Notes: generated by a model not told the origin, from the sequence alone. A DNA stretch of 64,000 nucleotides from Ylistrum balloti (GCF_031769215.1 NW_026782427.1:1-64000), one strand, 5' to 3'; numbered from the stretch's first letter, positions 31,307-51,600 are shown. Translations and numbers: made by a program.

Positions 31307-31409
31307 ACAATTTTGCAAGTTACTGCTGCTTTTTACGTTTTAGTGTAACCAAGTCTTTTATTTGTACACTGTATACTTTTTAATAATGTATGTAATCATG
31401 TCATTTTTG

Positions 31410-32450
31410 CCTTTTGAGGTGCATACAGATGCGAGTTCCAAGGCATTAGGCGCAGTTTTATACCAGGAAGAGAACGGCAAGAAAGCAGTCATAAGCTATG
31501 CCAGTAGAGGACTGAGTCGAGCAGAACGCAATTACCCTGCGCATAAATGGGCCGTAACAGACAAATTTCAGGATTATTTGTATGGAACAACATTTACTGT
31601 GTATACGGATAATAATCCCCTGACATACGTTTTGTCAACAGCCAAGTTGGACAGCTGCTCTAGCATCATATGATTTTTCAATCAAGTACCGTCCTGGAAA
31701 GTGTAACACTGATGCAGACATGCTGTCAAAACTTGAGTACAGTAATAGTGATGATGATCCAGAAGGAGAAATTGAGCAGATTACTATAAAGGCTGTTTGT
31801 TCCAGCATACAGACTCGTGCTAGAGCTGAAGTGGTCACCTCTGATTCCTTGATTGATCTAGATGATCTGGATAATGGTGTTATGGAAAATATGACACAAC
31901 GACAGTGGAGGAGCATGCATGCACAAGATAGAGTTTTGAGGCCAATGATCACAGCTATCAGAGATGCTAGGAAGCCACATAGACGGAATCTCTCCAAGTT
32001 ACTGAGATACTTTGACAGTCTTGTTTTGGACCAAGGTGTGCTTTGCCGTACTTCAAAGAGAAATGGGGAATGTGTTCGACAATGTGTGCTTCCTTCAGTG
32101 TTAGTTAACAAAGTTCTCCATTACTTCCATGATTGTGTTGGACATCCTGGAAGAGACAGGACACTCTCTTTGATTCAAGAGAAATTCTTCTGGCCTGGGA
32201 TGACAAAAGACGTGGATAAATGGATACAGAAGTGCCCTCGTTGCACCAGAAGGAAAACACCATGTTCTACGCAGAGATCACCTTTGGTACCCATAGTTTC
32301 AACACAGCCATTGGAAGTCATCTGTGTTGACTTTTTGAGACTCCATCAGATCAGGGAGCCAACTTTGTTGGAAAGGTTATCCAGGAGTTATGTTTGACAG
32401 CGGGAATAAAGAAATCACGAACAACACCATACCATCCCATGGGAAATGGG
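31410..32450 (+). mobile_element. Gypsy pol fragment (RNase H + integrase N-half), left of the AcademH insertion
   Basis: TDASSKALGAVLYQ..YASRGLS..ERNYPAH, TDNNPL, H..GH..C..C (integrase Zn finger), and [11 protein letters not shown] ending at the TSD. Confidence 0.92.
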
Positions 32451-33572
32451 TACTCCAACAATGTTAGAGGTTTTACACGGCGAGACACTTTTGATAGGCG
32501 CCGTGTAACCTCTAACTTCCCATAGGCGATTTACCCGATGCTGACAGGCCAATAATCAAAGTTCCGATTATAGCATTATTTATCAATTTTACTTACATTT
32601 AAATGACCAGCGATGTCGTGTTAATACCTCTCTTTGAAAAATCCATTATAAAATCCAGGTTGATAAGAGAAAACAGCATAAAATAATGATTTTAACATCT
32701 CCGTGGATAAGCTGATACAACATTACAACCGAAATTATAAATACCACGTGACTGCTCGGTAAATACAAAAATGGAATACACAATGCAAAAAAAGCGGAAA
32801 GCTTCGTCCAACAGTGTTCGTTTTTGATAGGGGCATCTAGTCTTGCCTACTAAACGCGAAATTGTTATGAGGAGAAAAGGGTCGGACTTATAAATGTGAA
32901 ATTTGTTAATTAATGTATTTTAAACAATTAGAACTTACTTATAGAATATAAAAACTACCAATATTACATCATGACCTACATACGCTGGTCGGCAGATTTA
33001 TTATCTGACGTTATTCGTATTCATTGCATAATTGGAATTTTTAATTAACATAATTTATAAAAAGGCATATTCATGATTTCATCCGAAATAATTCAGGATT
33101 TATAATTGCGTGGAGACAATGAACTGAGCATCACATAATGCACACGTTTCTTTCTTACACAAGATGTGTACAGACTTATCATTACATATTCAATATCTTG
33201 AAGGTTGAGTGTTACATCTATAGCTGGAATGATCGTTTCTAATCCATTATCGCTTTTTTTCAAACAGCTGTAAATTTGCAAATCTTTAATGGTAAACAGC
33301 ATGATGATGATAATGATTATGTTGATTTGAAATTTCTTTCTTCATTTTTTCCTTTCGTTTAATACGCCAATCGAAGTACATGTATGGCATGACACTGTCC
33401 GTCCAAACGTCCATTGTAACTTTCCGTTTGTCCGAAGGTTTCTCCGGCAGTTTTTTTGCGTTCTGTTTAGAATTCATAATCACAAGGCTATGTGAAGTAT
33501 TGCTTCTTGTCGAGTGAAAATTGGTTATGTTTTATAGGAAAAAGTTAATATTTGTTATATTTGTTCACAATG

Positions 33573-35378
33573 TTAACTCAAGCCGTCTCCATACACAACA
33601 GTAGGGTATGGTTTGCCATCTACAGAAGGCACATACTCTTGTATCTTTTTGTAAATTGCTATAGCTCCATTTGTTGATGATGGGTTCTCGTCAAAAACTC
33701 CTAAATTCACCAGGACTGACTTCTTCCTCATTTCATTTGAATGCATATGCATAATATGAGGAATGGCACAGTCATGGAAATTGTCCCGGAACCATGGAAT
33801 ATGTCGTGTCAGTATCCGCCCTATGATAGTCGACATGCGGAAATCCCTCTCGCTAAAGTCTTCTTCATTTGGGACGAATGTGTCTAGCGGGAGTTGTGCT
33901 GCGGGAGTGTTACCATCAAATGCCTGAAGATGAGTAACAGGTACTCTATTTATAGCCATATAACCCAGAGCCATGTTCATGTAAGTATTAGTTCTGTCTA
34001 CTGAAGGGTTCCTGGTGACTACCTTCTTTCCAACGTTGTCCCAGCAAGTTGTGAAACCAGGATGAAGTTCTTTCGCGACATTTTCTAACACTGTGTCTGG
34101 ATCATCATGAACAGGTGCGATGCCACTTAAGTCTAAGTGCATTTCATTTGGTTCCCTCTCATCGAAAGACTCTTCAAAAAACTCATTTAAATCTAAATCA
34201 TCTTCTTCATCAACCTCCTCCCCCTCCCCTTCATCATATGATTCATCTTCCGAATCTTCCCATTCCCATTCTTCTTCATTATCAGTTTCCTGCAATTCCT
34301 CATCAATAATCGTGTGTGAGAGGGCGGTGGACAACTCAAGTTCATCCTCATCCGTGGTCGGCTGTTCTGTCACACCAGAAGAAAGCTGCTCGTGAAGCTC
34401 TTCTTTCGTTGCCTTTGCCACTTCGTCAAAAGACTTTCTGATGTGATCAATGGCATTTACAGTGCCTTTGTAACCTAGACACAAACCTGTTCGACTGATT
34501 TGTTTTAAAGTATCCTTTTTCAGACCTCCTCTCCATAACTGTATAGAAAACAGTGTAGGTAAAAAGCTTGCCTTCCTTGGGGCCTTTGCGTGTAGGAGTG
34601 TAGCTAAAGCACATCCAACCATTGGTTTGAGATTTGTTTTTTGACCCCGCATGAGTGTTTCTGCACCTTTAACTGTCGTTGCTATCCCAGTCAAAACAGC
34701 TGATGTCAAGGGTGCAAGGGTTGCAAAGGTCGCCAGTGTTTCACTCGACGAAAATGAACTTGTATTTGCTAAGCTTACGTCCCTAAACAAGGGGAAATCA
34801 GACTTTAGAAGCTTTTGAATTTCCCCGCGAACAATTTTACTTACAACCGATTGAAAGTGCTTTCTTGAACCAGTAGTTTCGTTATATAACCCTCTAATTG
34901 CAGAGGAATATCTCCGTGTGCTGACGTTGTGTATAATTGGATCCCATCGTGAAGAATGCGCTGTTTTCCTCACGAAAATCCCTGATTTTGTTCGCCTCAA
35001 AGGTGTGCTGGTTTTTTGTTGAGTATTAGAGCTTGCAATTGTGACCGATTGTTGTGAGGAAGCCGAAGGCATCACCATAGCACTATCTTCATTTTTGGAA
35101 TGTATATATGAACCTTTCCTTGAACGACTCCAGAAGTCATCTACGGATTTCCGATATTTCCGACTATCAGAAAGGCTACTCCAGCAGGAAGGACAGAGAT
35201 ATTTCCCAGACCGCTTTTTGGAAACCGGTGTGAAGCTTGCATTTGATATGGACGACAAAGCTTCTCTTCCCGTAACTTCAGATTTTGGTAAAGTTGTTTC
35301 TAGAGAAAATCTGAAAAATCCTTTACCTTTGACCTTCTGTTTGAAGTTGTCTCCGCAGTTGGCACAAAGATTATCCAT
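33573..35378 (-). CDS. Academ-type transposase, C-terminally truncated
   Basis: N-terminal C..C...C..C, then G.CLGY, an acidic tract, WDNVG, NRVP, EMRKKS..VNLG..DENPSS and YGDGLS, followed immediately by TAA. The C-terminal catalytic half is absent. Confidence 0.75.
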   Translation of the reverse strand: MDNLCANCGDNFKQKVKGKGFFRFSLETTLPKSEVTGREALSSISNASFTPVSKKRSGKYLCPSCWSSLSDSRKYRKSVDDFWSRSRKGSYIHSKNEDSAMVMPSASSQQSVTIASSNTQQKTSTPLRRTKSGIFVRKTAHSSRWDPIIHNVSTRRYSSAIRGLYNETTGSRKHFQSVVSKIVRGEIQKLLKSDFPLFRDVSLANTSSFSSSETLATFATLAPLTSAVLTGIATTVKGAETLMRGQKTNLKPMVGCALATLLHAKAPRKASFLPTLFSIQLWRGGLKKDTLKQISRTGLCLGYKGTVNAIDHIRKSFDEVAKATKEELHEQLSSGVTEQPTTDEDELELSTALSHTIIDEELQETDNEEEWEWEDSEDESYDEGEGEEVDEEDDLDLNEFFEESFDEREPNEMHLDLSGIAPVHDDPDTVLENVAKELHPGFTTCWDNVGKKVVTRNPSVDRTNTYMNMALGYMAINRVPVTHLQAFDGNTPAAQLPLDTFVPNEEDFSERDFRMSTIIGRILTRHIPWFRDNFHDCAIPHIMHMHSNEMRKKSVLVNLGVFDENPSSTNGAIAIYKKIQEYVPSVDGKPYPTVVYGDGLS

Positions 35379-35408
35379 GGTTATCTTCAGAAAGGACACA
35401 ATGAATAT

Positions 35409-35865
35409 CACAATAAACAGTCACTGTTGTAAAGGTTTAGCGGTAGAACACCACCAAACACAAAAAAAAATCCACTCTCTGTTGTGAGGCGAATCACAAT
35501 AAAAACAGTCACTGTGGTAAAGGTTTAGCGGTAGAACACCACCAAACACAAAAAAAAATCCACTCTCTGTTGTAAGGCGAATCACAATAAACAGTCACTG
35601 TGGTAAAGGTTTAGCGGTAGAACACCACCAAACACAAAAAAAAATAACAATAAACAGTCACTGTGGTAAAGGTTTAGCGGTAGAACACCACCAAACACAA
35701 AAAAAAATCCACTCTCTGTTGTGAGGCGAATCACAATAAACAGTCACTGTGGTAAAGGTTTAGCGGTAGAACACCACCAAACACAAAAAAAAATCCACTC
35801 TGTTGTAAGGCGAATCACAATAAACAGTCACCGTGGTTATGGTTTAGCAGTAGAACACAACACAC
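35409..35865. repeat. ~87-bp tandem repeat, ~5.5 copies, between the helicase and transposase genes
   Basis: Unit acaataaacagtcactgtggtaaaggtttagcggtagaacaccaccaaacacaaaaaaaaatccactctctgttgtgaggcgaatc. One copy is internally deleted. Confidence 0.95.
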
Positions 35866-35925
35866 TGTAAGTCATTATCAGAGTAGAAACATAACATCTC
35901 TTACTGCTGTACACTCATACCACTG

Positions 35926-37356
35926 TCAGTATAATGGGTCTGTTGGACCGTCAGTTAAGTCCGCGAATTTGTTTACATCAAACTGCTTTACCTTACACGG
36001 GCATTGTTGTTGACAGCGTGAGCAACACATACATTTATGGCATAGACATCTTTCTGTGTCACAATCTCCTCCGCATGCATTTTCCAAAACAGTATGGTCC
36101 GCCTTATCACCTAGGTACTTTAAAATGGTCTTCCGGAAGCAAGTGTCTCCCTCCACAATAGACTTCATATCCTTATTGGTACCCTTTGCTGACAAAGTAA
36201 AGTTGTCGTACAGCACAAATGAGTAACCCGGTCGACCGTCCCTTGCACATCTGCCAGCTTCTTGCCAGTAACTCAGTATAGATTTTGGACTTCCAATATG
36301 CATAACTATGTCTACATCATCTATTTGGATACCCATACCCAGAGCTACAGTGGCAATCAAACATCGCAAATTTGAGTTAGTATCCTTAAAGTTCTTTATT
36401 ATTCTTGTTTTTGACTCCTCGTGTATACTTCTGTGGAACATTTCAATTATCGCATGATTGGAATGTTTTATATTGTCAACATATGCATCGATTCCCAAAC
36501 TGCGTCGGAGTAAAATGAAAACGTCAGCAACCCTATCTATGCTACGGCAATATACGATTATTTTTTTGGCAGCTGAACTTTTCTCCCGTAAATGAGTTAA
36601 CAGCCAATCCAACTTTTCTTCTAAATCCGTAGAGTCGGCCTTTTTGAAATCAAGGAATATATTAGGACGGTCTGGTGATTTATCGATAATTACTGCATCA
36701 TCTATTTGAAGGTATTTCTTTATATCTTGCTTTACCGCTTCAGTTGAAGTAGCCGTTAGAGCTAAAACAGGGGCGTGTATTGCTGATCGAAGTTCATGCA
36801 AATATCTGAAATCTCTTCTGAAATCCTCACCCCACTCTGACACACAATGTACTTCATCTACAACGAGGGCGATGGTGTTTTCCCTCCACACATTTGACAT
36901 AAAAATATCTTTCCAAAATGGTTTTAGTGCCGTTTCTGGGGAAGAAAACACAAAATTGAATGTTCCTTCTTTTATTCCTTTGATAATTTCAGGGTCCATA
37001 TCTGGCTCTATTTTTGCAGCCGTGAAATTCCAGTAATGAAGACTATTTATTTGATCGTCCATGAGTGCCCGTAAAGGTGAAATGACCAAGGTGATAGGAT
37101 TTGCTATATCTGCTAGCATTGCTGAAAGTACTGCACAAAATGTCTTACCATAGCCAGTTGGGAGCAATCCAATAACATTTTTTTTTTCGATGATACATTT
37201 TGCAGCTTCAAACTGTTCAGGTTTGGGTTCAAATTTGATGTTATATCTCCCTTTCACTGTATTAAACTTCTCTTTCAGCTCAGTTATATCCATTTTGATA
37301 AAACTTAACAAAATACAACAAGAAATGCAACCATTAACGTTAACACTTGCTTGCAT
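35926..37356 (-). CDS. RecQ-like SF2 helicase of AcademH (likely start ATG 37293)
   Basis: Uninterrupted ORF with motifs PTGYGKT, ISPL.ALM.DQ, DEVH, TAT, AT.ALGMG and QEAGRCARDG, plus a C-terminal Cys cluster. Confidence 0.93.
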   Translation of the reverse strand: MQASVNVNGCISCCILLSFIKMDITELKEKFNTVKGRYNIKFEPKPEQFEAAKCIIEKKNVIGLLPTGYGKTFCAVLSAMLADIANPITLVISPLRALMDDQINSLHYWNFTAAKIEPDMDPEIIKGIKEGTFNFVFSSPETALKPFWKDIFMSNVWRENTIALVVDEVHCVSEWGEDFRRDFRYLHELRSAIHAPVLALTATSTEAVKQDIKKYLQIDDAVIIDKSPDRPNIFLDFKKADSTDLEEKLDWLLTHLREKSSAAKKIIVYCRSIDRVADVFILLRRSLGIDAYVDNIKHSNHAIIEMFHRSIHEESKTRIIKNFKDTNSNLRCLIATVALGMGIQIDDVDIVMHIGSPKSILSYWQEAGRCARDGRPGYSFVLYDNFTLSAKGTNKDMKSIVEGDTCFRKTILKYLGDKADHTVLENACGGDCDTERCLCHKCMCCSRCQQQCPCKVKQFDVNKFADLTDGPTDPLY

Positions 37357-37674
37357 TTATAACTCACATTGGTTGATATAGCGCTGTTGTCATGTTATAT
37401 GACACCATGGGCAACATGGTAGGCCTATATATATATGTGTGTTACGAGAAAACATAGTACTTTCAGGGTAACACTGAGATTAAAATACCGCGGTGCATTA
37501 TGGGAGATGCTGGATCATCGATTCATTGAAGAAAAAAACTGTAGCCCAAATTTACAAGTAAAGTTTGGGTTATTTGGTATATTGTTTATAAACTACTGGC
37601 ACGTGTCTCCACTAATTTACATACAATGTAAACATTACAGTTTGGCGGGAAAAACTTAACAAGTGCATTCCGCC

Positions 37675-38373
37675 ATGGCGATGAAATTTGTTCTGGTCTC
37701 TGATTCAAGAGCAAATAACTTCGACAGCTATCACCAGCCAGATGATTTTGATATTGATTACCTAGTTGAAAGGGGAGCGAAGATTGAAAACGCAAGAAAA
37801 AACATACTTAGTTATCTGGAAAGTAACAGAGAGGAAAACATTGTTATAACAATCTGCGTTGGAATAAATGATCTACTTGTACTGAAAAGGAATGCTTCGG
37901 GGAAATACATCGTGCCTGCACAGAGAGACGTGTCTGCTATTTTTGAGGACATGAAAAGACTTAAACACGAAATTATCCAAAAGTGTCCAACTGCTCTCGT
38001 TGGTTTCATTACCATTCCCCCGGCATGCATACGGGAATTTAACAATATACACTGTAGACATCAACTGTACGACCTGGACACTACATGTATGATGCAAAAA
38101 AAACATGTGGAAGACGTTCAAAAAATTAATTCTTTTCTCAGGGGATTGAATATGGAAGAAGAGACAGGTGGCGGTCCTTCTTCAACAGTGGAATGGGCAG
38201 AAACCATTATGAGAAAACACAAAAAGAGATGCGGACGTAAACGTTATGTTAAAGAAGTGTTTAAATTTTCTTTTGGACATTTGTATGACGGATTGCATGC
38301 ACATTCAGATATGAAACATGTGTGGTTTGAGAAGTTAGTCACTGGCTTCCGTCGTGATTTGAAAAAAAAATAA
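37675..38373 (+). CDS. SGNH/GDSL-hydrolase-fold protein, 232 aa, intronless
   Basis: GCCATGG start context. Block I VSDSR, block II RGAK, block III GINDL, block V DGLH. Confidence 0.75.
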   Translation: MAMKFVLVSDSRANNFDSYHQPDDFDIDYLVERGAKIENARKNILSYLESNREENIVITICVGINDLLVLKRNASGKYIVPAQRDVSAIFEDMKRLKHEIIQKCPTALVGFITIPPACIREFNNIHCRHQLYDLDTTCMMQKKHVEDVQKINSFLRGLNMEEETGGGPSSTVEWAETIMRKHKKRCGRKRYVKEVFKFSFGHLYDGLHAHSDMKHVWFEKLVTGFRRDLKKK

Positions 38374-39003
38374 CTGTTTTACAATGTACCTATATATTAT
38401 CTTTGAAATGTATTTGTAATACATGTAAAAAGCCTGTTGTTTTTTATTATTTACCTCTAGACTTCATATATTTGTCGTGCTGGAACTTAATTTATCGGAA
38501 AATCTGACTGACTGTCTTTTTAATATCACTTTTGCAAAATGAAACGTAAACTGTTTTCCGTTTGTGATATATTTAGCAAACTATTCCGCTTGATACTCTA
38601 TTCCGCATTTTGTACCGACCGCGGCAGCCATTTTCGAAAGATAGGTCAACGAAGCGGCTTAATGTTGCAGGAGTGTGTTTCGAAGCATATTATTATTAAT
38701 ATGGTGTTAATTCATGGTTTGGACGTTCATATGGGATAATTAATACCTAAACTGTAAGTACACATTGTTGTCATCAAGTATTAAGTCATAAATAGACATA
38801 AAATTGAATCTTACGTTCCTCCCTGATTTGAGGGCGGAACGAGCATCAAAGAAATAGTGCTTGGGAAATAAGAGGTCGCAGTCGGCACAATAGATAGAAT
38901 TCCCATGACGTCACACATCCGGGCATCTTGCGACCTCCGCCATATTGTGGGTCAAGCGATAATAATCAGTCATTCGAGCGAAGCACATTTAAACAAACAG
39001 ACG

Positions 39004-41379
39004 ATGGTTCACTCCTGCGTAGTGTACGGCTGTACGAATCGGGCGAACGACAGGGGAACAAAGCGTGGTTTTTATGGATTCCCTACTGTAAGACTCCACG
39101 AGGACAAATGGACAGAAGAACTCAGCAGAGAGAGAAGAACAAAATGGATCGCGGCCATAGGCAGAAAGGACTTCGTGCCATCAACCCATTCTAAAGTGTG
39201 CTCGGATCATTTTTTAGAAGGTAGATTGTTGTCGCTGTGAGCTGGGGGAATTATAATATCGGTGGTGAAATGGTACAGCCTGCCACAAACAACCCATCAG
39301 CCACGTTTTCTTCCATCAACTAACTTTATTAACCTCAATAGAAAAGAGTTCCAAAATTGGAGTTGCGTCCCCTGGACCCGTGGGTCATGCCAACTTACCT
39401 ACCCAACACCCCAATACACAACAAGATAAACTGACATCAATTGATTTCATTTACTACTTAGCTACATAAAATATTTAAAGTCGCACGAGTTTTGGAAACG
39501 TGCACTAATAATGCGAATCACATTTATAATGAGACACTGTACAGTACAGTACAGCATGCGATAGTTTTGTAACATGGCATTTGGTGCAAATACCTGTAAA
39601 TCTGAACTTATTGTTTTATCCAATATTTATATGACGTGTTTTACTTCACTCGAAGTGATTTATTCCTAGTGGTGCTTTCGAACAACATACGAGTCCTGTA
39701 CCGGAAATAATCTTATATCTTTATTTAGGCTCTAGGCCTAGTACCGACTAGTAGTTACGTACGATCTTGTATAACTACAATGTATGTAGTAGATGCATTC
39801 TTTTAAAGATATCAATAATACCACGGACTTATATCTATATTTATAAGTCCGTGATAATATACTTTGATCATAACATGTCCTTATATTATCTCTTTTATCA
39901 TATATAAAAACCAGGTCAACTTCAAGTACATGTAACATACATACACTATCAGGCCTGTCTCACTATAAATAAATAGTGTGATGAAAAAATAAGTATTTAG
40001 TTCTGTAACCAGTTCATTATTTTTAATCCCATTCCTTTTTTTAAGATTTTTCTTTTTTTTTTGCAGGTAAACCATCAAAGATTTTTGATAAAGCAAATCC
40101 TGACTGGGTCCCCTCATTGAAGTTGAATAGGAAGTTGACATCTCCAACAACTCCAAGCAGCCAGAGTGAGCGTTTCCAACGGGCAAACCAACGTGATGAC
40201 AAGCGGAAACAGCATTTAGCTGCCAGAGCTTTAATGGATTTATCCACATGTAGTGTCCAAGACAGTCAGCCACAGGTGTGTGATTGGCTTCAGAAAGATG
40301 ACAAACCTGTTCACTTCTTCAAATTAGGACCTCTCTTCCCTGCAGAATCAGCGAAAGACCTAATGGAGGTTAGAAGTCAGGAAAAGGAAGAATTGTTGAA
40401 GAAGTTAAATGCAGAGTGTCAGGAGCGGACAACAGAAAACCTTACATTAAGGCAACATATCCTGGAAGGGCAGATATTCAGTGAGGATGCATTCAGAGAC
40501 AATGACAAGAAGGTAAACTGCTTCACAGGGCTTCCAGGATTTTTAACTTTGATGACTGTGTTCGACTTTGTGAAAGATTACATTCCAGATAGCGGCCGTG
40601 TGACATTCTCAAAGTTTCAGAGATTTATTATGACTCTGATGAAACTGCGACTTACACTCTCCCTTCAGTTTCTTGGATATATCTTCAATATCTCACAGCC
40701 CACCGCATCAAGGACATTCCTAACTGTATTGGACGTTTTATACATTAGACTGCGAGAGTTTGTTTACTGGCCAGAGAGAGAGGAACTGAGACTTTCAATG
40801 CCCATGGAATTCAGGAAGCATTTTGGCTTGAAAGTCGCTGTTATCATTGATTGTTTTGAAATCTTTATTGAGCGGCCTTCAAATCTTCTTGCAAGAGCAA
40901 AGACATGGTCTTCGTATAAACACCATAATACTGTAAAAATATTAATTGGAATAGCCCCTCAAGGATGTATAACCTATCTGTCAAATGCTTGGGGAGGACG
41001 CAGTAGTGACAAGTATATTGTGGAAAACAGTGGCTTTTTAAAGAAACTTCTTCCAGGAGATATCGTACTTGCTGACCGTGGTTTCGACATTCAGGAAAGT
41101 GTCGGTGTAATGTGTGCGGAGGTTAAAATACCAAGTTTTACTAAAGGAAAGAGCCAGTTGTCAGCACTTGAGGTAGAATCCACAAGAAACATTGCACATG
41201 TCCGCATTCATGTGGAACGCGTGATTGGACTGGTTAGGAACAAGTTTACAATTCTTTCAGATACTTTACCTGTAGACTATTTGATTGCGCGCACAGGAGA
41301 TGTTCCAGCTGTAGACAAAATTGTTACTGTTTGCTGTAGTTTGACCAACTTGTGTGGTTCTATTGTGAATTTTGATTGA
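39004..41379 (+). CDS. ISL2EU THAP-DDE transposase, 2 exons (39004-39220, 40067-41379), 509 aa
   Basis: THAP C..GC..W..CSDHF|GKP..PDWVPSL with a phase-consistent GT-AG intron. DDE motifs IDCFE, ADRGF and HVERVIG. No stops. Confidence 0.92.
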
Positions 41380-41606
41380 CAATGAAAACACTTCATACAT
41401 TTTACACTTAAAGTAGTGTATTTGTCAAAAGAATGTGAAATCTTGAAATTAGTGAATATGGCATTTTTTTCTGAATGATTTACTATTGTCTGGATCATAA
41501 TTAATCCATATTAAGAATATTATATATTATTAATATTTTATAACTCTATATTTAAATATTTGTTTGCAACCATATTGTGTTCAAATGATGATGCTGATTA
41601 TAAGTA

Positions 41607-42312
41607 CAGTCAAACTGTGTATAAAGGACACTGAGGGGAAGTGACAAGTATCCCTTATAGACAGGTGTCCTTTATATACCCATACAAAACTTGGAGACAG
41701 AGGTTTTTCTCAGAAATAAGTCCTGTCTGTCCCTAATTAAGTATTAAAGTATAAGAGAAATCTTACTACAACCTGATATATTTTATATGACATTTTATTT
41801 TAATCTCATCTTTTAGTTATTAAGATAACCACTTTGTGTATTTTTCTACATGATAACCAATCAAAACAAAAAGTTGAATATCAGCCTTTCTTGAACATGA
41901 GTGTGTATGATTTGTGTCTGTAGACACTTAAAGCAACAGCATCCCTTCCAAATCATTGACACTAGATAATTCTCTTGTGTATATGTAAACAATGACACTT
42001 AAACCATTCATTTTTATCATATCTATGAGTTTACTTGTTTCTTTGAAAACTATAAAATGTGCTTATAAATGATATAACTAACACTTGTAGTGATATATAT
42101 ATATTTAGATACAGTTACATGTACACAGAATATTCAAATGTTGTTGTCCTCTAAATAGAGGTTATTTTGCATAGAAAATAGTGTTTGGGGGAATTTCTAA
42201 GTCTCCTTTATAGAGAGTGTCCTCTATATAGAAGTATATTATATAGTAAAACTTGTTGGGGTTCCTGAGACTGTCCTTTATAGACAGGTGTCCTCTAAAG
42301 CAGGTTTGACTG
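41607..42312. mobile_element. Tc1/mariner-type MITE
   Basis: TA TSD at 41605-41606 and 42313-42314. TIR CAGTCAAAC..aaaggacac with repeated tatagacaggtgtcc subterminal motifs. Confidence 0.8.
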
Positions 42313-42494
42313 TATTAATCGTAGCACGAAATGTACATAGATGGTACTTGTAGTTTCTGTTTCTGCAGACCTGTCCTTTGTACTCAATATTACTGCCATG
42401 TAATGTATATGATCCCAGTGTTAATCATGAGGAAATATTAATATATTTTCAATAAATTAATTTTCAAGTATTTATTATGGCTTTGAATTGTTTT

Positions 42495-42812
42495 TATTAA
42501 AACAAGCTTACAGTAAGTGTTGCATGCAACACATGTCCCCTGCCATAAATTACAGTATTTATCTGCACAACTTCAATACGACAATTTCTGTTTTTAGTAT
42601 CAGTGACCTTTATAGTTGACCTTTCTTCCCAAAACCATATCAAATAATTCATCACCTTATAAGCTACCATTGTATGAAGTTTCATTCAAATCCATCAATC
42701 CGTTCTCAAGTTATCATCTGGAAACCAACATATAGACAGATACATATATAACAGACTGACAGAGATAAACACTATTGTCCCCCCTGGTTTCACCAGTAGG
42801 GGACTATTAAAA
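42495..42812 (-). repeat. HINE-like interspersed repeat
   Basis: The minus strand reads tagtcccctac..ggggggac, a tctgtc tract, a core gaatgaaacttcatac, and a 3' palindrome gtgttgcatgcaacac. Confidence 0.55.
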
Positions 42813-43094
42813 TGACTTAGGTCTTAAGTCAAACTAAATAAATTTGTCTACCAGGTATATTATGTAAACATACACCTGGAAACTCTTGATAATTGGAAAC
42901 AACTGCTTGTATTTCTAAACATTGTATATCAGGTATTGTCATTTTGTCATATCACACCAATGACAATATGACAATATACTACTGGAGAAAACAATGACAG
43001 ACACAAATAATTTAACTTTAAATACAAACAATTTAATTTCAAAAGGAGAGTCCATACATATGTACAATCACAATTAAATATTACGTTCCATCTA

Positions 43095-43430
43095 GTCTGA
43101 AAAGTTTAATACAAATTTAGCAATTAAAAAAACTTGCCAACAATTTCTATAAAATTTCATCATCATCATCATCATCATCACAATCATCATTACATGTGGC
43201 ATTGCAATCATCATCATCATCATCACATATGGAATCTACTTAAACAAGTTTAATACAAATAAAGCAATTAAAAAAACTTGCCAACAATTTCTATAAAATT
43301 TTATAATCATCATCATCATCATAACAATCATCATCTCAATCATCATCTCAATCATCATCATCATTACATATGCAATCTAGTTTAACAAGTTAAATACAAA
43401 TTTAGCAATTAAAAAAACTTTCTATAAAAT

Positions 43431-43464
<34 letters not shown>

Positions 43465-43560
43465 CATATAACATTGCAATCATCATCATCATCACATATG
43501 TCAATGCAATCATCATCATCAATCATCATCACATATGGCATCCAATATGTTATGTGACAC
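43095..43560. repeat. Three ~140-bp tandem units with (CAT)n microsatellites
   Basis: agtt(t)aatacaaat..gcaattaaaaaaactt..ttctataaaattt followed by catcat arrays, repeated three times. Confidence 0.85.
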
Positions 43561-43564
43561 TGAA

Positions 43565-46361
43565 CTATTTTTTCCTGCTGAAGACTGGTAGCTTCCTGCA
43601 TTCCGGACAGAACCATTCTGCATTCTTCCTTGGGGCACGCTTTAAGTTCACACATTTAAAGTGAAGCCATTTATAGGAACAGTTCTGGTTGTCACAGCCA
43701 ATAACTCTATCCTCTGTGTCATCATAGGGTTTTCTGCAAATGCAGATTGTCTCATCATCACCATTTGCATCCACTGTCGGTGTTGGTGTCAATGTGTTGG
43801 CAGTTTCAACTTTCTGAAGTTGTGTTGAAAGTACAGGTTTAGAGTAATGCTTACACAGTAACTCTGGAAGAACAGCACTTTTAAAAAACTTCTCTGCTTT
43901 CCCTCTTGCTTCCTCCCAAATGTCCAAGTCTGGCTGAATTCTCTCTATGTGGATGGCTTTATGTGTCCATACAACAAAATCACAAAAGTCCTTCTCGCAA
44001 ATGAAAATCTGAGCTTGAACCTGGGAATAGTATGGGTGATTCCTCTTTAGTCGTAGATCATCTCCAATCTTCTCCAGGCAAAAGTCCTTGTTGAGATTAG
44101 ACAAGTCCTTCCCTTTGCAGCTGTATGGGCACTTGACCTCCACACATCCATTTCCACAACAGGCACATGAAACTAGGAGGTCTGGTGTTGCTCCAAGGAA
44201 AGGGGACCGGGTATCAATTGTAAGTCCGCACTTGCTGTGATGCATGTCTTGATGGTCTGCTGTTGTTTTCTTGATGTATGCATCAATGGCTGATTTTTCA
44301 TGTTGACATCCCCAGTCTGTGGCCTTGCTTCTAAATTTTAAACTTTCTGGATAGCAAACTGACTTGATGACACTTAGCGATGGCTTCTCTGGATTGGTAT
44401 GGCAAACAGCATGAAGACGGGACGCAGTGATTCTCCCACTCCTGAACCGAAACCAATCTTTACTGCTTGCCTGACGGCGAGTTCTCTCCTCCACAGCTGC
44501 TGCCTGGGATGCTGTTACTATGATGTCATCGAAGATGATGTCACACTGGTTGTGAAGTTCATCTTCAGTCATTCCAACATACTCCTCATTGTACAACTCT
44601 GAGAGCACTTTGGGAAGATGTACACTCAGTGAGGCAGGTTTGAAGTGTTCAGCATAGCCTGGCATCAGAGACAACAATACAGACTTTGACTGGCTCTCAT
44701 GTAACCTCCGCAGGAAGCCATTCACTTCATCTTTGGAAGGGGTTGGTACATCATTCCTACGAGCTGCCCTCAGGGTTGGAGTTGTTGGAGTTGGTGGAGT
44801 TGTGATACTCTCGTCTAGTCTGCACTTTATTGTAGAGGCTGAGGTGAAATCGATATCTCTGACTTCATCGTATGTAACCTTTTCTATCCCTGATGGAAGC
44901 AGCCAGTAAGCAGGGGACTGTGTCACTGTCTTAGAATTGCGGATCTTCACTGCAGCCTCTATCCAGAACAGCAATGCTCCAACATGGGTGCAGGTTTCCC
45001 CCAAGCCAGCCATGCATGTACAGTGTGCAGCAAGAATTGTTCCATCGGAATTGGCTATGACCCATGGTTGAAGTGGCGCTTCATTCATCCTCTGGGAGTG
45101 GCGTACCTAAAACAAATACATTAAACTCATATAAAGGATATATTGAAATGAAAACAGGATATTGATTTTTCAATTAAACTAGCACACTGCTACCTCATAT
45201 TCAGGGCAGATAATTCATACATCAAGAATAAAATACAGAAAATGTCTGAGATATGAATGCTGCCGCCGCCCCCATGTGAATTAAAAGTAAAAAGGAAATA
45301 AAAGAGGATCAATTTGATTTCACGACATGACGGCCATGGGTAAAATTATGGCAGGGATATAAGAAGAAAGACTTGCTCTAGAACTCCCTCCAAAAAAAAA
45401 ATAAAAATAGATAGATAATAAATAAGTAATTAAACAAAATTAATCAAATGAAAGATTTGCAGTATTTCTCACAGTCCATTACATACTTGTATGAGGACAA
45501 AATTAAATAGATAAACTCATTAAGTTTAAAATATTATGATAATGCTTTTTTTATATAGGCCTATATAATTTAGCACCCTTTCATACTAGGCCCACCAAAA
45601 TTTCTTTATTGAAAATACTTTAACACTAGATTCTATTCAATCAAGCCTACTTTTTGTTATAACATTATACTTCATCTGAATTCTAGTCTTAATATCACAA
45701 TATTTTTTCTCAATTTTTTATTTGTAACTTCTGGCATAATCTACGGTTATAACACAGAGTATGTTATACATCTGGTCAAGTTCAGTTAACTCAAGTTACT
45801 CATGCCTACGCTTTACGTGGGTCATTTTACTAGGACAGTGTAAACATTGTCGTTTGAAGATCGTATTTATAAACGGGCAGCCTACAGTAGGGGGGTTTAG
45901 TTTTGATTATTTCTAGGCTCGGTCATAACCGGAACAATGACGTTATAAGCCCCCATTAATCGATCAAATCAAGCATAAGTTATGATCAGGACAGTACAGT
46001 AAGTAGTACTACACACCTTTGCAAACATCAGAATGTTCTTCGTAACGAACGATGAAATGTGGCCGACCTCCTTCACCCAACCGCAAACAAACTGGTTGTA
46101 GGATTCCAGGGACTTGTAAGCTTTCAAATCCTGCAATGTGTAGGCACTCTGAGTGTGGACCAAGTAATTAACGATGTCTGGGTACGTCACATCTGGAAGA
46201 CCATCAGGATCTGAACGCCAGTCGCTTTTCTTCACTTCATACGGATCTAAATGGTCTACTAGTTTAATTTTCTCTCTATAACGTGCCAAAGTAATCGGGT
46301 CAAGTCTGTCTGTATAGCTAACCTTGATTGGCTGTTCTGGAGGGCTTTTCTGCGACGTCAT
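43565..46361 (-). CDS. ISL2EU partner protein: SWIM finger + YqaJ/lambda exonuclease + PHD finger, 2 exons (46017-46361, 43565-45106), 628 aa
   Basis: The splice restores AK|VRHSQR. SWIM CTCMAG..C.H. YqaJ motifs RITASR, WGCQHE, GATPD, EVKCP, QVQAQ. PHD C.C..CD...C..WLH..C..W.C..C. No stops. Confidence 0.92.
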
Positions 46362-46523
46362 TGTTAGCGATGACTCATGCAAATTGATATTTAAATATGA
46401 ACTGCTTGACCCACAAGATGGCGGCGCTAATTCAAAGCCCCGGATGTTGTGACGTCAGCGAATACTATCTATAACATCAGATAATAAATCGGCCGACCAG
46501 CGTCCTCTTATGTTATAGGAGTA

Positions 46524-48590
46524 GGGAAATGGGTTGTGTGAGCGGTTTAACCGTACATTACTGGATATGTTAGGAACTTTGGAACCAAGTGAGAAACATG
46601 ATTGGAAGAAACACATTGGACCCCTGGTGCATGCATATAATTGCACTCGTCATGAAAGTACAGGACATACACCGTTTTATCTCATGTATGGGAGACATCC
46701 AAGATTACCAAGTGATCTAGTGTTTGGAATAAGTAAATTCCACGAAGGAAGGGATGACAGCTATTCACAATATGTAGTCACTAAGAAGAAGGTTGAAGTC
46801 TTCCTATGAGTGTGCAGCCAAAGCATCAAGTCGTGCCAAAGAGCGACAAAAGATAAACTACGATACTCGTGTAGGAGGCTCTTCTATCCAGACAGGTGAC
46901 CGGGTACTAGTGACGATTTTGGTACATGACGGTCGCCACAAGTTATCTCCCAAGTGGGAGGAGGATGCATACATTGTTCTTGATCAGCCGAATAAGGATA
47001 TACCTGTTTTTAAAGTGAAAAAGGAAACTGGCGAGGGAAGGATCCGAACTCTTCATAGAAATCTGTTACTTCCTATCTCTAGTGTGCCAGTAGTCACTGA
47101 CCAACCGAACAATGAAGAGGAACAGACCAGGACTGGTGAGTCGTGTGTTACTTCATTAGAGGATGAATCTTGCAATAGTGAGAGTGATTCTGAAGATTCA
47201 TATTTTGTTCCGACTTCTCCGGTAGCAGTTGGGAGTGCCCCATACACCACCACAGTAGATACTGCTGCTGCAGAAACCATTGTTGTCTCCGAACTCACAG
47301 ATGACGGTCCAGTTGAGGTTACGGAGACAGGAGGAGAAAGGGATATTGGTGACGACCAATCGTCCATGGATGACGAACATATTCCTACTTCTCGGCATGA
47401 TCCCATTACATCATCTGATGGTAATGAGGTGTCCATAAACGATGCTGACATTTTGGATCAGACAGCACACGTATACAAACCAGTTCCTGTGCCTAGAAGG
47501 TCAGTGCGGAAGAGGGAAAAAAACAAAGTGGCAGACATCAAGTGATTTTGTTTTAAATATGTTGCAAACCCCAGGAATGTGTGTTCAAAGTCCGGACCGG
47601 CTACTTCGTGTGGTGTTACAACGCCATACTCGTCTCAACCCGGAGGCAAAGGAATTTGTCCCAGTAACTGTCAATGCAGAGTCGTCTGCACCTGAAAGTG
47701 TTGTTGTATCAGACAGTAAGAGCAGTGCGTTACAAAGTGATGACTCCGATATGAATACTGATAGTGCGGTTGATTCTAGTGACTCTGAGGAAACGCGTAC
47801 TAAAGCTGTTGAAGGTGAGCATAGTGATGGTGCAGAGACTGTCACTGAACATCCAACTTCGATAGAGACAGCATGTGCTCAGCCAGAAAGTGGACAGTCA
47901 GATAGTGCGGACAATATTGGTACGGACTCTGGTGATGGTGACTCGCTCCAAAGAACTCTCCGTCGAAGCACGCGTATATTGCGCCCGTTATGCAGATTGA
48001 CTTATGGTGCTGATGGATCTCAGATGTCATACAATGCATGGTCGATTACAGCACATTCTGAAAGTTGTGACATTGATCTCAAATAATGTGTAGTGATGTA
48101 GGGAGACTATATATGTTGAATTTATGTGATTCTATTTTTTATGAACTGTAGCAACTTTTGTTGAACAATGGTCGACATAGTGTCGAAAAGTATTTTTATG
48201 GTTCTTCAGAAAGTGGAAATTATATTTTTTATACTCTAGTCAAATGTATTTGATTGACTTAAAGTCATAGATCATATATCGGTCAGGCCAGCCGTTGATC
48301 TTTAATACTGGGTCTGCGTACCTGGGTAACATTGTAATGACATCATGAGTATATTAGGTCTGTGTACCTAAAGATTTTTTTTTTCTATTTTGAGAACTGT
48401 AACATGTACATTCCTAGTCAGCAAAAGCGCATTTGTGATTTTGACCAAAGCATATTTTTATTGTAACGCTCAAAGGTACAGTTTGTTTTAGAGTTATATA
48501 TTGTGTGTTGATGTCGGGACGACATCAAAGTTACAGGGGGAGAGTGTAATTGTGTCAGCGTTTTGTTAGAGGGGTATATTTTTTTTAAAT
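46524..48590 (+). mobile_element. Right part of the split Gypsy element (integrase C-half, acidic tail, PPT 48535-48544, start of 3' LTR at 48545)
   Basis: CERFNRTL..YN.T.H.STG.TPF.LM.GR.P and K...KWE..Y. The sequence gtcgggacgac..agggggagag is followed by TGTAAT. Confidence 0.88.
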
Positions 48591-48649
48591 TGGCTACAGT
48601 CGAACCTGCCTATTTAGGTCGAGCAAGTATATGCCAATCGAACGCACCC

Positions 48650-51600
48650 GTTTCTGCTTGACTAACACAGTGTCTCCAGCTTCTAAAGCTGACTCGACAG
48701 CTCCGCGTTTCTGATCAATATAAAGTTTATTTCTGTGTTTCATTTCACTGTCGCGATCGCGAACACTTTCATCAACATGTCGCTCTAACTGTTCCACCTG
48801 AGGTAATTTCGTACCCCACATTAATTCAGCTGGCGACACTCCTGTCGTCGCATGTGGCGTCGTCCGATAGGCTAAAAGATAAGTTCTGAGTTCATTTTTC
48901 CAATCTTTTGACTCGGCATGCGCGATTTTAATACGCTTGAGTAAAGACCGATTCTGTCGTTCTACCTCCCCATTCGCGGCTGGATGCAATGGTGTTACGC
49001 GACGATGGTGTATGGCATTCTCCTCCATGTACTCTCTAAACATATCGGACTTGAACTGGGGTCCATTATCGGACGTGACAGAGCACGGTAACCCATAACG
49101 ACTAAACATAGTCTCTAACACATCAATCAGCTTTCCGGTAGACATGTCCTTAGTAATTTCCAGCTCATAATATCTGCTATAATAATCAACCACGACAAAT
49201 ACATAGTGTCCGGTTGGGAGCGGTCCCATGAGATCAATCGCTAGATCTTGCCATGGTCCTATCGGCAAGGGTGTGGGCGTTACTGGCTCAGCGTGTGTAG
49301 AACTATCAACAATTTGACAGCCATGACACGCTTTCACATAGTTTTCTACATCCTTGTCCATACGCGGCCACCACACTTTAGTTCGGAGTTGTTTCGTTCC
49401 CACGATACCTAAGTGTCCTTGGTGAGCTAACTCCACACATTTCCTACGCAACGCTGTCGGAATTACTAACCGGGTTCCTCTTAACACTAAGTAACCGATT
49501 TGACTGAGTTCTTCTCTGACTGGGTAGTACATTGGACACGACTTGTCCCACCTACGCGACATTAGACAGATTCTTACGTCAGATAGTTCTTGGTCGACCT
49601 TTGACATTCCCTCGACCTCACGAGTAGACAACGCAATTGGAGTTGCCTCCCTTGCTGTAAACCTGACAAACTCTTCTGTCTCAGACTCTAGCTGACTCGG
49701 TGTCGGACTGACTTTGAGAGCCGGGTTCACTAACCTAGATAACGCATCAGGGATGTTTGTTTTTCCAGGTGCATATACAACTTTGAAATTGTATGGCATT
49801 AACTTCACGATCCATCGCTCAATCATGGCGTTAGGTTTTGACCTAGGTCCATACAACACTTCCAGCGGTTTATGGTCGGTAACCAATTCAAACGCGACTC
49901 CCTGGAGATACAATCGGAACTTCTCGCAAGCCCATACCACTGCAAGAGCTTCTTTCTCAGTCGTAGAGTACCTTTTCTCCACATCTGTCAACGCTTTGCT
50001 GGCATAGCTTATCACCTGCGAATTTCCATCATTTGACTGAATCAACATGGCTCCTAATCCTACATTACTAGCATCGGTTACAACTGTCGTCTTGCTAGCG
50101 TCAAGCTTAAAATGACCTAATGTCTCTGCTCTAGACAAACTCCCCTTGAGCTTATCAAAACTGGCTTGTTCTTCCTTTCCCCAACAGAACACAGCACCTT
50201 TCCTCGTAAGTTTCCGTAATGGCTCAGAAACTGTGGCCAGGTCCGGAATGTATCTGGCACTAAAATTCACCAATCCTAAGAAGCTTCGTATCTCAGCCCC
50301 TGATGTCGGAGGTTTCGCCTCAATGATCCCTTTCACTTGATCTGCTGTCGGCCCTATGCCGTCCATTGAAACCATATGTCCCATAAACTGAATCTGATTC
50401 ATCCCTAACTGACATTTCTGACGATTCAATGTCAAATTATTCTCCAAGATCCTGTCAAACACCTTCGCAAGTCGACGGTCATGTTCTTCCTTAGTTTCAG
50501 CGTGGACGACAATATCATCAGATATATTTTGTACTCCTTCACAGTCATGGAATACTTGCGAAATAACCTGCTGGTATTTCTCTGGTGCAGAATTTATACC
50601 AAACATAAGTCTTTTGTAGCGATAAAGACCCTTATGCGTAACAAACGTAGTTATGTCTCTCGAGTTCTCGTCCAACTCAATCTGGTGATAACCGTACTTG
50701 AGATCTAACTTGCTGAATACTTTGCTACCGTTCATGTTATACATGATCTCATCTACTGTCGGAATAGGATGTCTCTCCCGTATAATTGCTCTCTGTTTGC
50801 TTGCCTCATATCAACACAAATACGAATGTCACCGTCCGGTTTAGGCACGACAATGCAAGGACTGACCCAAGGTGTCGGCTTCTCAACCTTTTCAATAATA
50901 TCCAAGGTTTCCAACTCATCAATCTTGTCGCTTACCTTCGCCCTCAAACTATACGGTACCCTATACATGTGTTGAGCTACAGGTCGGACTGTCTCATCTA
51001 TGTGTAATTTCAGCTGATAGTCTTTCAACTTGCCTATACCATTAAAACATGCAGAATATTTGTCCAACAGATCATCCGTTACAACGTTAACCGAGTTGAC
51101 ACCTATCCTCAACATTCCAAGTTCCATGGCGGTGTCCCTACCAAGTAAGGCCGGTCCAGATCCATCCATCACATATATTTCAGCTTCAGACTTGTGGTCT
51201 GTATTGGGTACGTGAACTCGAGTCTGAAATTTCCCAATGAGCTTTAACGGTGTATCGGACCCATATGTAAACAACTGTGTGTCAAGTTTTCTCCGACTTA
51301 CATGTAATGTGGTTCTGTTTCAATTGTTCCCACAACTTCCGGTCAATAATGTTCACCGTAGCACCACTGTCAACAATGAAATCAACATCCTGTTTGTCTA
51401 CCTGTAGGCGGAATTTCTCTGACCTAGATCTCTGACTGACATTAAAAGCATAGTTATTCTGTTCTGGTTCAACAGCACAAACATTTCCTTTCCGCGGCCC
51501 ATTATTCCTCTGCGAATATGAGCTACTACGTTTCTGAGAACTTCCGGGTAACTTACTCTTACAACATTTTGCGAAATGTCCCACTTTTCCGCATTCATTA

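Follow-up and report, generated by a model that had tools for sequence, protein, structure and literature searches.

A scallop transposon with transposase, RecQ-like helicase and SGNH esterase genes, the esterase related to pre-gag reading frames of Gypsy elements

Genes at the locus

The stretch of DNA analysed here, referred to throughout as the window, comprises 64,000 nt of the genome of the scallop Ylistrum balloti (GCF_031769215.1 NW_026782427.1:1-64000), given as a single strand from 5' to 3' and free of N runs. It contains a DNA transposon resembling those of the AcademH group, in which a gene for an esterase of the SGNH type lies head to head with a gene for a RecQ-like helicase of superfamily 2 (SF2), and the remains of a transposase gene follow the helicase (Table 1). 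An earlier note on this DNA had described an intact helicase, a divergent and intronless open reading frame (ORF) of 232 aa with four SGNH blocks, about 380 bp between the two start codons, and a truncated transposase; all four observations were borne out, the distance between the starts being 381 bp. The esterase frame is open from 37663 to 38373 on the plus strand, its first ATG being at 37675, and it is free of introns.

The residues characteristic of SGNH enzymes can be read directly from the predicted protein: the serine of block I (S11, in VSDSRA, the earlier note's SDS motif), the glycine of block II (G34), the asparagine of block III (N65, in GIND) and the Asp-x-x-His of block V (D205 and H208, in DGLH). 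Relatives were collected by a profile search of a protein library clustered at 50% identity (420 representatives), 80 of which were taken for alignment. Gly34 and His208 are conserved in all 80 sequences, Ser11 and Asp205 each in 79, and Asn65 in 57, with cysteine in the others. Submitted singly, the esterase ORF returned nothing from Pfam or from sequence searches of the PDB, and a profile search of the PDB with the 80-sequence alignment gave nothing useful; matches to the Pfam domains Lipase_GDSL or Lipase_GDSL_2 were obtained for seven of the 80 family members, and these were weak. The family was identified only through the fold search and the weak Pfam matches of some relatives.

The fold itself is clear. 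An AlphaFold (AF2) model built from the 80-sequence alignment reached a predicted local distance difference test score (pLDDT) of 96.8 and a predicted template modelling score (pTM) of 0.91; a first run, with three sequences, had given a pLDDT of 56.5 and was discarded. Foldseek returned 172 matches from the PDB at E<=0.001, the top 50 of which were all SGNH/GDSL esterases with a probability of 1.0. The PDB matches include sialate O-acetylesterases, PAF acetylhydrolase Ib and bacterial GDSL lipases, and those in the viral library are SGNH domains of phage tail proteins. Model and matches agree on the three-layer alpha/beta/alpha fold of SGNH enzymes, which is the outcome the earlier note had anticipated from such a model, and the Ser, Asp and His of the catalytic triad are all present in the sequence. 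The enzyme is predicted to be catalytically active. The putative substrate would be on the side of the host, for example a lipid or an O-acetylated sugar, and the esterase would be expected to have no part in the DNA chemistry of transposition. No N-terminal hydrophobic segment was found in the protein. Ahead of block V the protein has a conserved insertion, a K/R-rich beta-hairpin (residues ~179-198), which might represent a putative nuclear localisation signal or a contact with nucleic acid.

The helicase frame extends over 476 codons (35926-37356, minus strand), of which the 455 aa starting at an ATG at 37293 are taken as the protein; this start is shared with annotated orthologues. Identity amounts to 83% with a Ylistrum balloti protein, 74-80% with proteins of Mizuhopecten yessoensis and 69% with one of Pecten maximus, the names given to them being RecQ-like or WRN-like.

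Sister copies and relatives of the esterase

Five sister copies of the element were compared with that in the window: L004 and L013 from Ylistrum balloti, L006 and L012 from Mizuhopecten yessoensis, and L005 from Pecten maximus. Two more distant elements with a helicase and a transposase, the helicase of which is around 50% identical, were also included, L007 from Mytilus edulis and L008 from Ruditapes philippinarum. The order of genes at the sister loci, as determined by TBLASTN, is the same in all five (SGNH <- -> helicase -> transposase): the esterase ORF lies on the strand opposite to the helicase and immediately upstream of it, and the transposase follows the helicase downstream. The copies lie on different contigs, and their different flanks and target-site duplications indicate that they are not segmental duplicates of a single locus. 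One of them, L012, is complete, being 7.3 kb long with the same termini as the window copy, a perfect 10-bp duplication (GTATGATCCC), a transposase ORF of 922 codons, and none of the nested sequence that interrupts the window copy; a target duplication was also sought at the right end of L004, which is unrecognisable, and was not found.

The esterase ORF is unannotated at all five scallop loci. It is intact in the two other Ylistrum copies (67% identical to the window protein in L004, and 67-68% in L013), and broken in those from Mizuhopecten (58-60% in L006, 63-70% in L012) and Pecten (46%). The earlier note had proposed that the esterase belongs to an AcademH-type module of helicase, transposase and esterase, and that it should then be a constant component of other copies. 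Its recurrence in five of five sister copies in the same place and orientation, one of these copies having a perfect 10-bp duplication, upholds that proposal. The further observation that neither an insertion boundary nor a duplication surrounds the ORF also stands: in an independent DNA run, a contig of 2141 nt bridges helicase, spacer and esterase (36447-38587) with six differences, no boundary is apparent in the spanning contigs, and no gag, long terminal repeat (LTR), 5' untranslated region or other retroelement remnant was found flanking the ORF.

Selection on the coding sequences, for which the earlier note had suggested an estimate of dN/dS, was gauged from the ratio of nonsynonymous to synonymous differences per site (pN/pS). 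Between the window and the other Ylistrum copies this ratio is 0.20 for the esterase, which retains 67% amino acid identity whilst 71% of the four-fold degenerate sites differ; for the helicase it is 0.13-0.18. L004 and L013 are two recent Ylistrum copies with little difference between them, and their pN/pS of ~0.55 is that expected for decay after insertion. The fixed place of the esterase in the sister copies, together with a pN/pS of around 0.2, argues that the gene is a constant and selected part of the scallop family.

The spacer between the two divergent starts cannot be aligned between species, apart from the core of an E2F-like site. This octamer, GCGGGAAA, of the E2F type, occurs once per element, always in the spacer and facing the esterase gene, and was found in the window, L004 (~9859), L013 (~9859) and L006 (~9701). 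The E2F-like site suggests that the spacer is a candidate promoter shared by helicase and esterase, which would be active in proliferating cells.

The family has also given rise to a deletion derivative of ~0.7 kb without genes, in which ~32797 is joined to 38554 and the sequence from 38554 to 38891 is retained. It was detected in contigs of the runs X1, X3, X6 and X10; the evidence from the DNA runs consists of such contigs, and the greater depth of the derivative relative to the full element should be read as a rough guide only. The abundance of short derivatives sharing just the ends of the element implies that the family was mobile. Runs labelled as a third organism contain a nearly identical form (3 differences in 338 nt), which points to activity in the very recent past, to a close relationship of the species, or to a transfer from one species to another.

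Relatives of the esterase outside this family point to retrotransposons. Out of 5.8 billion proteins, a word-indexed search retrieved two only, P0001 and P0002. P0002 (loci L001/L002) precedes a gag-like ORF and then a pol with the order PR-RT-RH-IN-PHD (protease, reverse transcriptase, RNase H, integrase and PHD finger), and the ORF next to P0001 (L003) is 58% identical to the gag-like ORF of L001. P0127 (L009) belongs to a tandem pair of Gypsy elements and, like P0138 (L011) and P0135 (L014), is an ORF ahead of gag or reverse transcriptase. All five readable contexts other than the Academ-like one are therefore LTR retrotransposons with the esterase ORF before gag. The contig L009 (GCA_040505915.1), labelled as a metagenome-assembled genome of Sedimenticola, is 12 kb long with the esterase ORF between two tandem Gypsy elements, and is almost certainly misbinned DNA of an animal host.

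In a maximum-likelihood tree, the transposon-borne esterases form a clade that is sister to P0001 and P0002 (ultrafast bootstrap 99, SH-aLRT 98) and nested within P0135 and P0127. A tree grouping the five retroelement ORFs to the exclusion of the transposon clade was rejected by the approximately unbiased (AU) test (p 0.0035), for which the groups were chosen after a quick first tree had already been viewed. This nesting of the transposon clade among Gypsy ORFs suggests capture from a retrotransposon. The window esterase belongs to the family by a full-length profile match and by its place inside the tree; it is not the first ORF of an LTR element, as no gag, pol or LTR adjoins it and it lies between the helicase and the end of the transposon. 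The relatives found are Gypsy pre-gag ORFs, and not the esterases of LINE (long interspersed nuclear element) ORF1 proteins or Ngaro elements to which the earlier note had pointed. In the elements from Mytilus edulis and Ruditapes philippinarum, the gene facing the helicase head to head is the transposase, and a search within 10 kb found no SGNH gene; hence the esterase appears specific to the scallop lineage, and the linkage of helicase and SGNH gene that the earlier note had envisaged in other molluscs holds amongst scallops but does not extend to these two bivalves.

Ends of the element and sequences nested within it

The element comprises two parts of the window, 32451-38891 and 46473-46523, split by a second transposon. 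The earlier note had delimited it as 32451-38891, with target-site duplications of 10 bp and terminal inverted repeats; its left end was correctly placed, whereas the right end is not at 38891, after which no copy of GGGAAATGGG follows, but at 46523. When 38811-38891 is joined to 46473-46523, the product matches the right end of the Mizuhopecten copy L006 without a gap (83% over 132 nt), and this unbroken alignment explains 38892-46470 as a nested element. A boundary for that element at 38870/46510, where there is an inverted match (AAGAGG.../...CCTCTT), was ruled out, since the Mizuhopecten right end aligns through to 38891; folding identified the match as part of the AcademH-like element's own subterminal palindrome.

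Fifteen of the 20 terminal bases are complementary between the left and right ends. The termini TACTCC...GGAGTA are kept in L004, L006 and L012, and conservation of the left terminus is 84-90% in L004 and L012. At each end, 12 nt from the terminus, is a palindrome with arms of ~18 nt, the DNA folds of which have z scores of -5.7 to -6.9; that on the left of the window copy folds at -18.1 kcal/mol (z -6.9), and the equivalent right-end hairpins of L012 and L006 have z scores of -3.9 to -5.7. The element interrupts the integrase reading frame of a Gypsy element: with the L001 pol as query, the frame breaks off at 32450, at aa 1113, and is taken up again at 46525, at aa 1111, as a 10-bp duplication predicts. 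Fragments of at least two Gypsy-type pol genes are present in the window. The one hosting the whole nest covers 31362-32450 (RNase H, and the integrase zinc finger up to 32450) and 46525-46725, and the second, a 716-aa ORF with reverse transcriptase, RNase H and integrase, is found at 48594-50744 on the minus strand.

Table 1. Features of the AcademH-like element and its insertions in the window
Feature	Position	Strand	Evidence or remark
Left 10-bp target-site duplication, GGGAAATGGG	32441..32450	.	identical 10-mer at 46524-46533
Left terminus TACTCC..., with imperfect ~20-nt terminal inverted repeat and subterminal palindrome (32463-32516)	32451..32516	+	palindrome 12 nt from end
Filler in place of the 3' 40% of the transposase gene (PHD finger, C-terminal DUF6589 part)	32804..33575	.	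~770 bp, unrelated, repeated
Transposase, N-terminal ~600 aa, truncated just past the GDGLS motif	33573..35378	-	ORF listing
Tandem repeat of 86-88 bp, ~5.4 units, 85-99% identical, between helicase stop and transposase start	35404..35878	.	
Intact RecQ-like SF2 helicase gene, 455 aa	35926..37293	-	PF00270 DEAD 9e-21, PF00271 Helicase_C 3e-16
Spacer between divergent helicase and esterase starts, 381 bp; E2F-like site TTTGGCGGGAAAA at 37641-37653	37294..37674	.	
Stand-alone intact SGNH esterase gene, 232 aa	37675..38373	+	ORF listing, AF2, Foldseek
Non-coding right-hand sequence as far as the nested insertion; left arm of right subterminal palindrome at 38870-38886	38374..38891	+	
Nested unrelated transposon, outside the AcademH-like element	38892..46470	+	inverted ends 38890-38957 / 46472-46404, AT at both flanks
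Final 51 bp of the element: right palindrome arm (46492-46509), terminus ...GGAGTA	46473..46523	+	
Right 10-bp target-site duplication, GGGAAATGGG	46524..46533	.	directly after ...GGAGTA

The transposase ORF in the window comprises 612 codons (33573-35411, minus strand) and is cut at 33573-33577. The remaining piece is 70-82% identical to pieces in L004 and 70% identical to the gene in L012, and has no Pfam match by itself. In other copies the transposase runs on past the GDGLS motif, with a PHD finger and ~300 further residues, and the full-length transposases of L012 and L007 match PF20231 (DUF6589; 3e-28 in L007) with an inserted PHD finger. The filler at 32804-33575 has no similarity to the transposase C-terminus of L004 or L012; beyond 33575, contigs of other copies read on into the coding sequence that would be expected there, and in contigs of the DNA runs the sequence to the left of 33577 forms part of a different, deeper repeat. 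Because its transposase lacks the C-terminal 40%, the window copy is non-autonomous and cannot move by itself. The filler also contains, at 32981-33011, 31 nt in inverted orientation that match the element's own right end (46473-46503) at 29 of 31 positions, possibly left behind by aberrant gap repair or by template switching after excision.

At the site of the tandem repeat between helicase and transposase, the copies in other species have just one or two copies of a 29-33-nt core, implying that the array of 86-88-bp units expanded in this lineage or in this copy. Rfam gave no match between 30 and 42 kb of the window.

The transposon that splits the element is 7.6 kb long and, by self-comparison, has inverted ends of ~70 nt and an AT duplication. 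It interrupts the right-hand palindrome exactly at its loop, leaving 51 bp of the host element on the far side, and is missing from the orthologous position in L006 and L012. Pfam identifies ORFs with THAP (38905-39240), HTH_Tnp_4/DDE_Tnp_4 (40117-41379) and, on the minus strand, YqaJ exonuclease and PHD (43565-45088) domains, a combination found in ISL2EU-type PIF/Harbinger elements. This second transposon is a separate element of the PIF/Harbinger type, inserted later.

Origin of the module and comparison with known systems

Taken together, we consider it probable that scallops harbour a family of AcademH-type cut-and-paste transposons with three genes, encoding a DDE transposase, a RecQ-like helicase, and an SGNH esterase which is derived from Gypsy elements and maintained by selection. 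An ancestor of this family would have taken the esterase once from a Gypsy pre-gag ORF, before the versions in the sampled lineages separated. A rearrangement would have moved the transposase downstream of the helicase, leaving the esterase in the slot that the transposase holds in Mytilus and Ruditapes. Purifying selection would since have maintained the gene, its catalytic residues included, for an accessory enzyme aiding propagation of the element, and the gene might be co-expressed with the helicase from the spacer, where the E2F-like site would point to dividing cells. In the window, one copy of this family inserted into the integrase gene of a Gypsy element, with a 10-bp duplication, and was split by the PIF/Harbinger-type element thereafter.

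Several observations weigh against parts of this account. The esterase ORF is broken in three of the six copies (L005, L006 and L012), as would be seen in decaying copies, implying that the enzyme is dispensable once a copy has inserted. Four-fold degenerate sites differ by 0.71 in the esterase and by 0.54 in the helicase (window 37675-38373 against L004 9114-9809), so that the histories of the two genes may differ in part, for instance through recombination between subfamilies. As to the origin of the esterase, genomic context is known for five of the ~420 family representatives, and the groups in the AU test were set post hoc. Finally, the assignment to Academ rests on architecture and on the length of the duplication.

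The broken ORFs would also be accounted for if the esterase were a neutral passenger, picked up a single time and retained because of its place between the helicase and the right end, without use to the transposon. DNA transposons, notably Helitrons, do pick up genes, as in the platyfish (PMC4021074), and the plentiful deletion derivatives of the scallop family move without any gene at all. However, at a divergence that has saturated synonymous sites, 67% of the residues and every catalytic position have been kept; the pN/pS of 0.20 is close to that of the helicase, the ORF is intact in three copies (the window, L004 and L013), its position and orientation are preserved, and the E2F-like site recurs in Ylistrum and in one Mizuhopecten copy. 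A mere passenger is for these reasons unlikely. It is a little less likely again that the transfer ran in the opposite direction, with Gypsy elements having obtained the esterase from an AcademH transposon. The strongly supported sister relation of the transposon clade and Gypsy ORFs carries no direction of its own, but the family has ~420 representatives, and all five contexts that can be read, spread across three branches, are LTR elements; the transposon clade is a single, long-branched group of tips among the Gypsy ORFs, the alternative to which was rejected by the AU test at p 0.0035, and the more distant AcademH elements examined are without an esterase.

That an independent fragment of a retroelement landed in the window copy, or that a host gene happens to lie beside the helicase, is scarcely credible. 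The window is indeed full of nested transposons, but the ORF is found inside an element bounded by target-site duplications at unrelated loci of several scallop species, it is not flanked by gag, an LTR or similarity to retroelements, and the contigs spanning 36447-38587 contain no boundary. Membership of another superfamily with a helicase, such as a helicase-bearing lineage of the Kolobok type or one yet to be described, is a possibility to which we assign little weight. Kolobok elements make duplications of 4 bp, TTAA. The only Pfam match of the transposase is to a domain of unknown function, DUF6589; the presence of this domain with an inserted PHD finger in full-length relatives is consistent with Academ, but is no test of membership. 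AcademH elements are described as combining a transposase and a helicase and making duplications of 9-10 bp, against 3-4 bp for AcademX (PMC10045372), and amongst helicase-bearing DDE transposons a 10-bp duplication is the hallmark of AcademH. The scallop elements have an SF2 helicase beside the transposase in all copies, terminal inverted repeats, and 10-bp duplications, with GGGAAATGGG present twice in the window and GTATGATCCC twice at L012, and we retain the AcademH-type assignment.

For twenty years such esterase genes have been on record in LINEs, some LTR elements and Penelope-like elements, and the roles proposed for them all suppose the life cycle of a retroelement, with packaging of ribonucleoproteins or their targeting to membranes. 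A DDE transposon with a selected esterase from the Gypsy pool would amount to a natural control, in which the usefulness of the enzyme can be seen apart from RNA, gag and reverse transcription. It would extend the exchange of accessory genes across the divide between class I and class II elements, add a third gene to the AcademH repertoire, and flag an unannotated gene family in scallops. More speculatively, the esterase could be a fitness factor independent of the mechanism of transposition, passed on in modular form between the retrotransposons and the DNA transposons of bivalves; we regard this as conceivable rather than likely. If it were true, the role of the enzyme would not be the assembly of ribonucleoproteins (RNPs), because it is selected in an element that has no RNA intermediate, capsid or reverse transcription. 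Its target would rather lie in the host, such as membranes, O-acetylated glycans, or a restriction or signalling pathway, and the enzyme would possibly serve access to the germline or spread from cell to cell.

Our literature search found no paper linking Academ, or any DDE transposon, with an esterase, although a prior annotation in Repbase or in the primary AcademH paper is possible. With AcademH elements the scallop family shares a large and separate transposase gene, a RecQ-like SF2 helicase, 10-bp duplications, short and imperfect terminal inverted repeats, and occurrence in molluscs. A PHD finger in the transposase is a further likeness: Kojima (2020, Mobile DNA 11:15) reportedly described one inside the transposase of one animal sublineage of AcademH. 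The scallop family differs in having a third conserved gene, the SGNH esterase, and in that it is this gene, rather than the transposase, that stands head to head with the helicase; the palindrome with ~18-nt arms located 12 nt from each end may also set the scallop element apart from AcademH as described.

The closest relatives of the scallop enzyme, the SGNH ORFs ahead of gag in Gypsy elements (P0001, P0002, P0127 and P0135), are stand-alone proteins of the same family (E 1e-44 to 1e-51, identity 38-43%), with the same size, catalytic motifs and K/R-rich hairpin. These are the first ORF of a retroelement RNA, preceding gag-pol, whereas the scallop esterase is a gene of its own, divergent from the helicase; P0001 and P0002 additionally have an acidic C-terminal tail of ~35 residues, which the scallop protein lacks.

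Amongst other mobile elements, the SGNH esterase of the ORF1 proteins of CR1, L2 and RTEX LINEs is active and binds acidic phospholipids (PMC3905857), and GDSL/SGNH esterases are also encoded by ORF3 of the bdelloid LTR element Vesta and by Athena/Terminon elements, having been exchanged between types of retroelement (PMC5408684). All of these resemble the scallop protein in being catalytically intact SGNH accessory proteins of a mobile element. Their hosts, however, are all retroelements, and the roles proposed for them, in RNP assembly or in targeting RNPs to membranes, presuppose an RNA intermediate; moreover, the LINE ORF1 esterases are fused to a coiled coil, whereas the scallop esterase has a single domain, with no reverse transcriptase or endonuclease nearby. 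The Helitron of the platyfish, which captured an SGNH hydrolase gene of its host (PMC4021074), is like the scallop family in carrying such a gene on a class II element. There, a rolling-circle element took up a cellular gene recently and in a single species, whereas the scallop gene comes from a family already borne by transposons, and has been kept in cut-and-paste elements of the DDE type across species of scallop.

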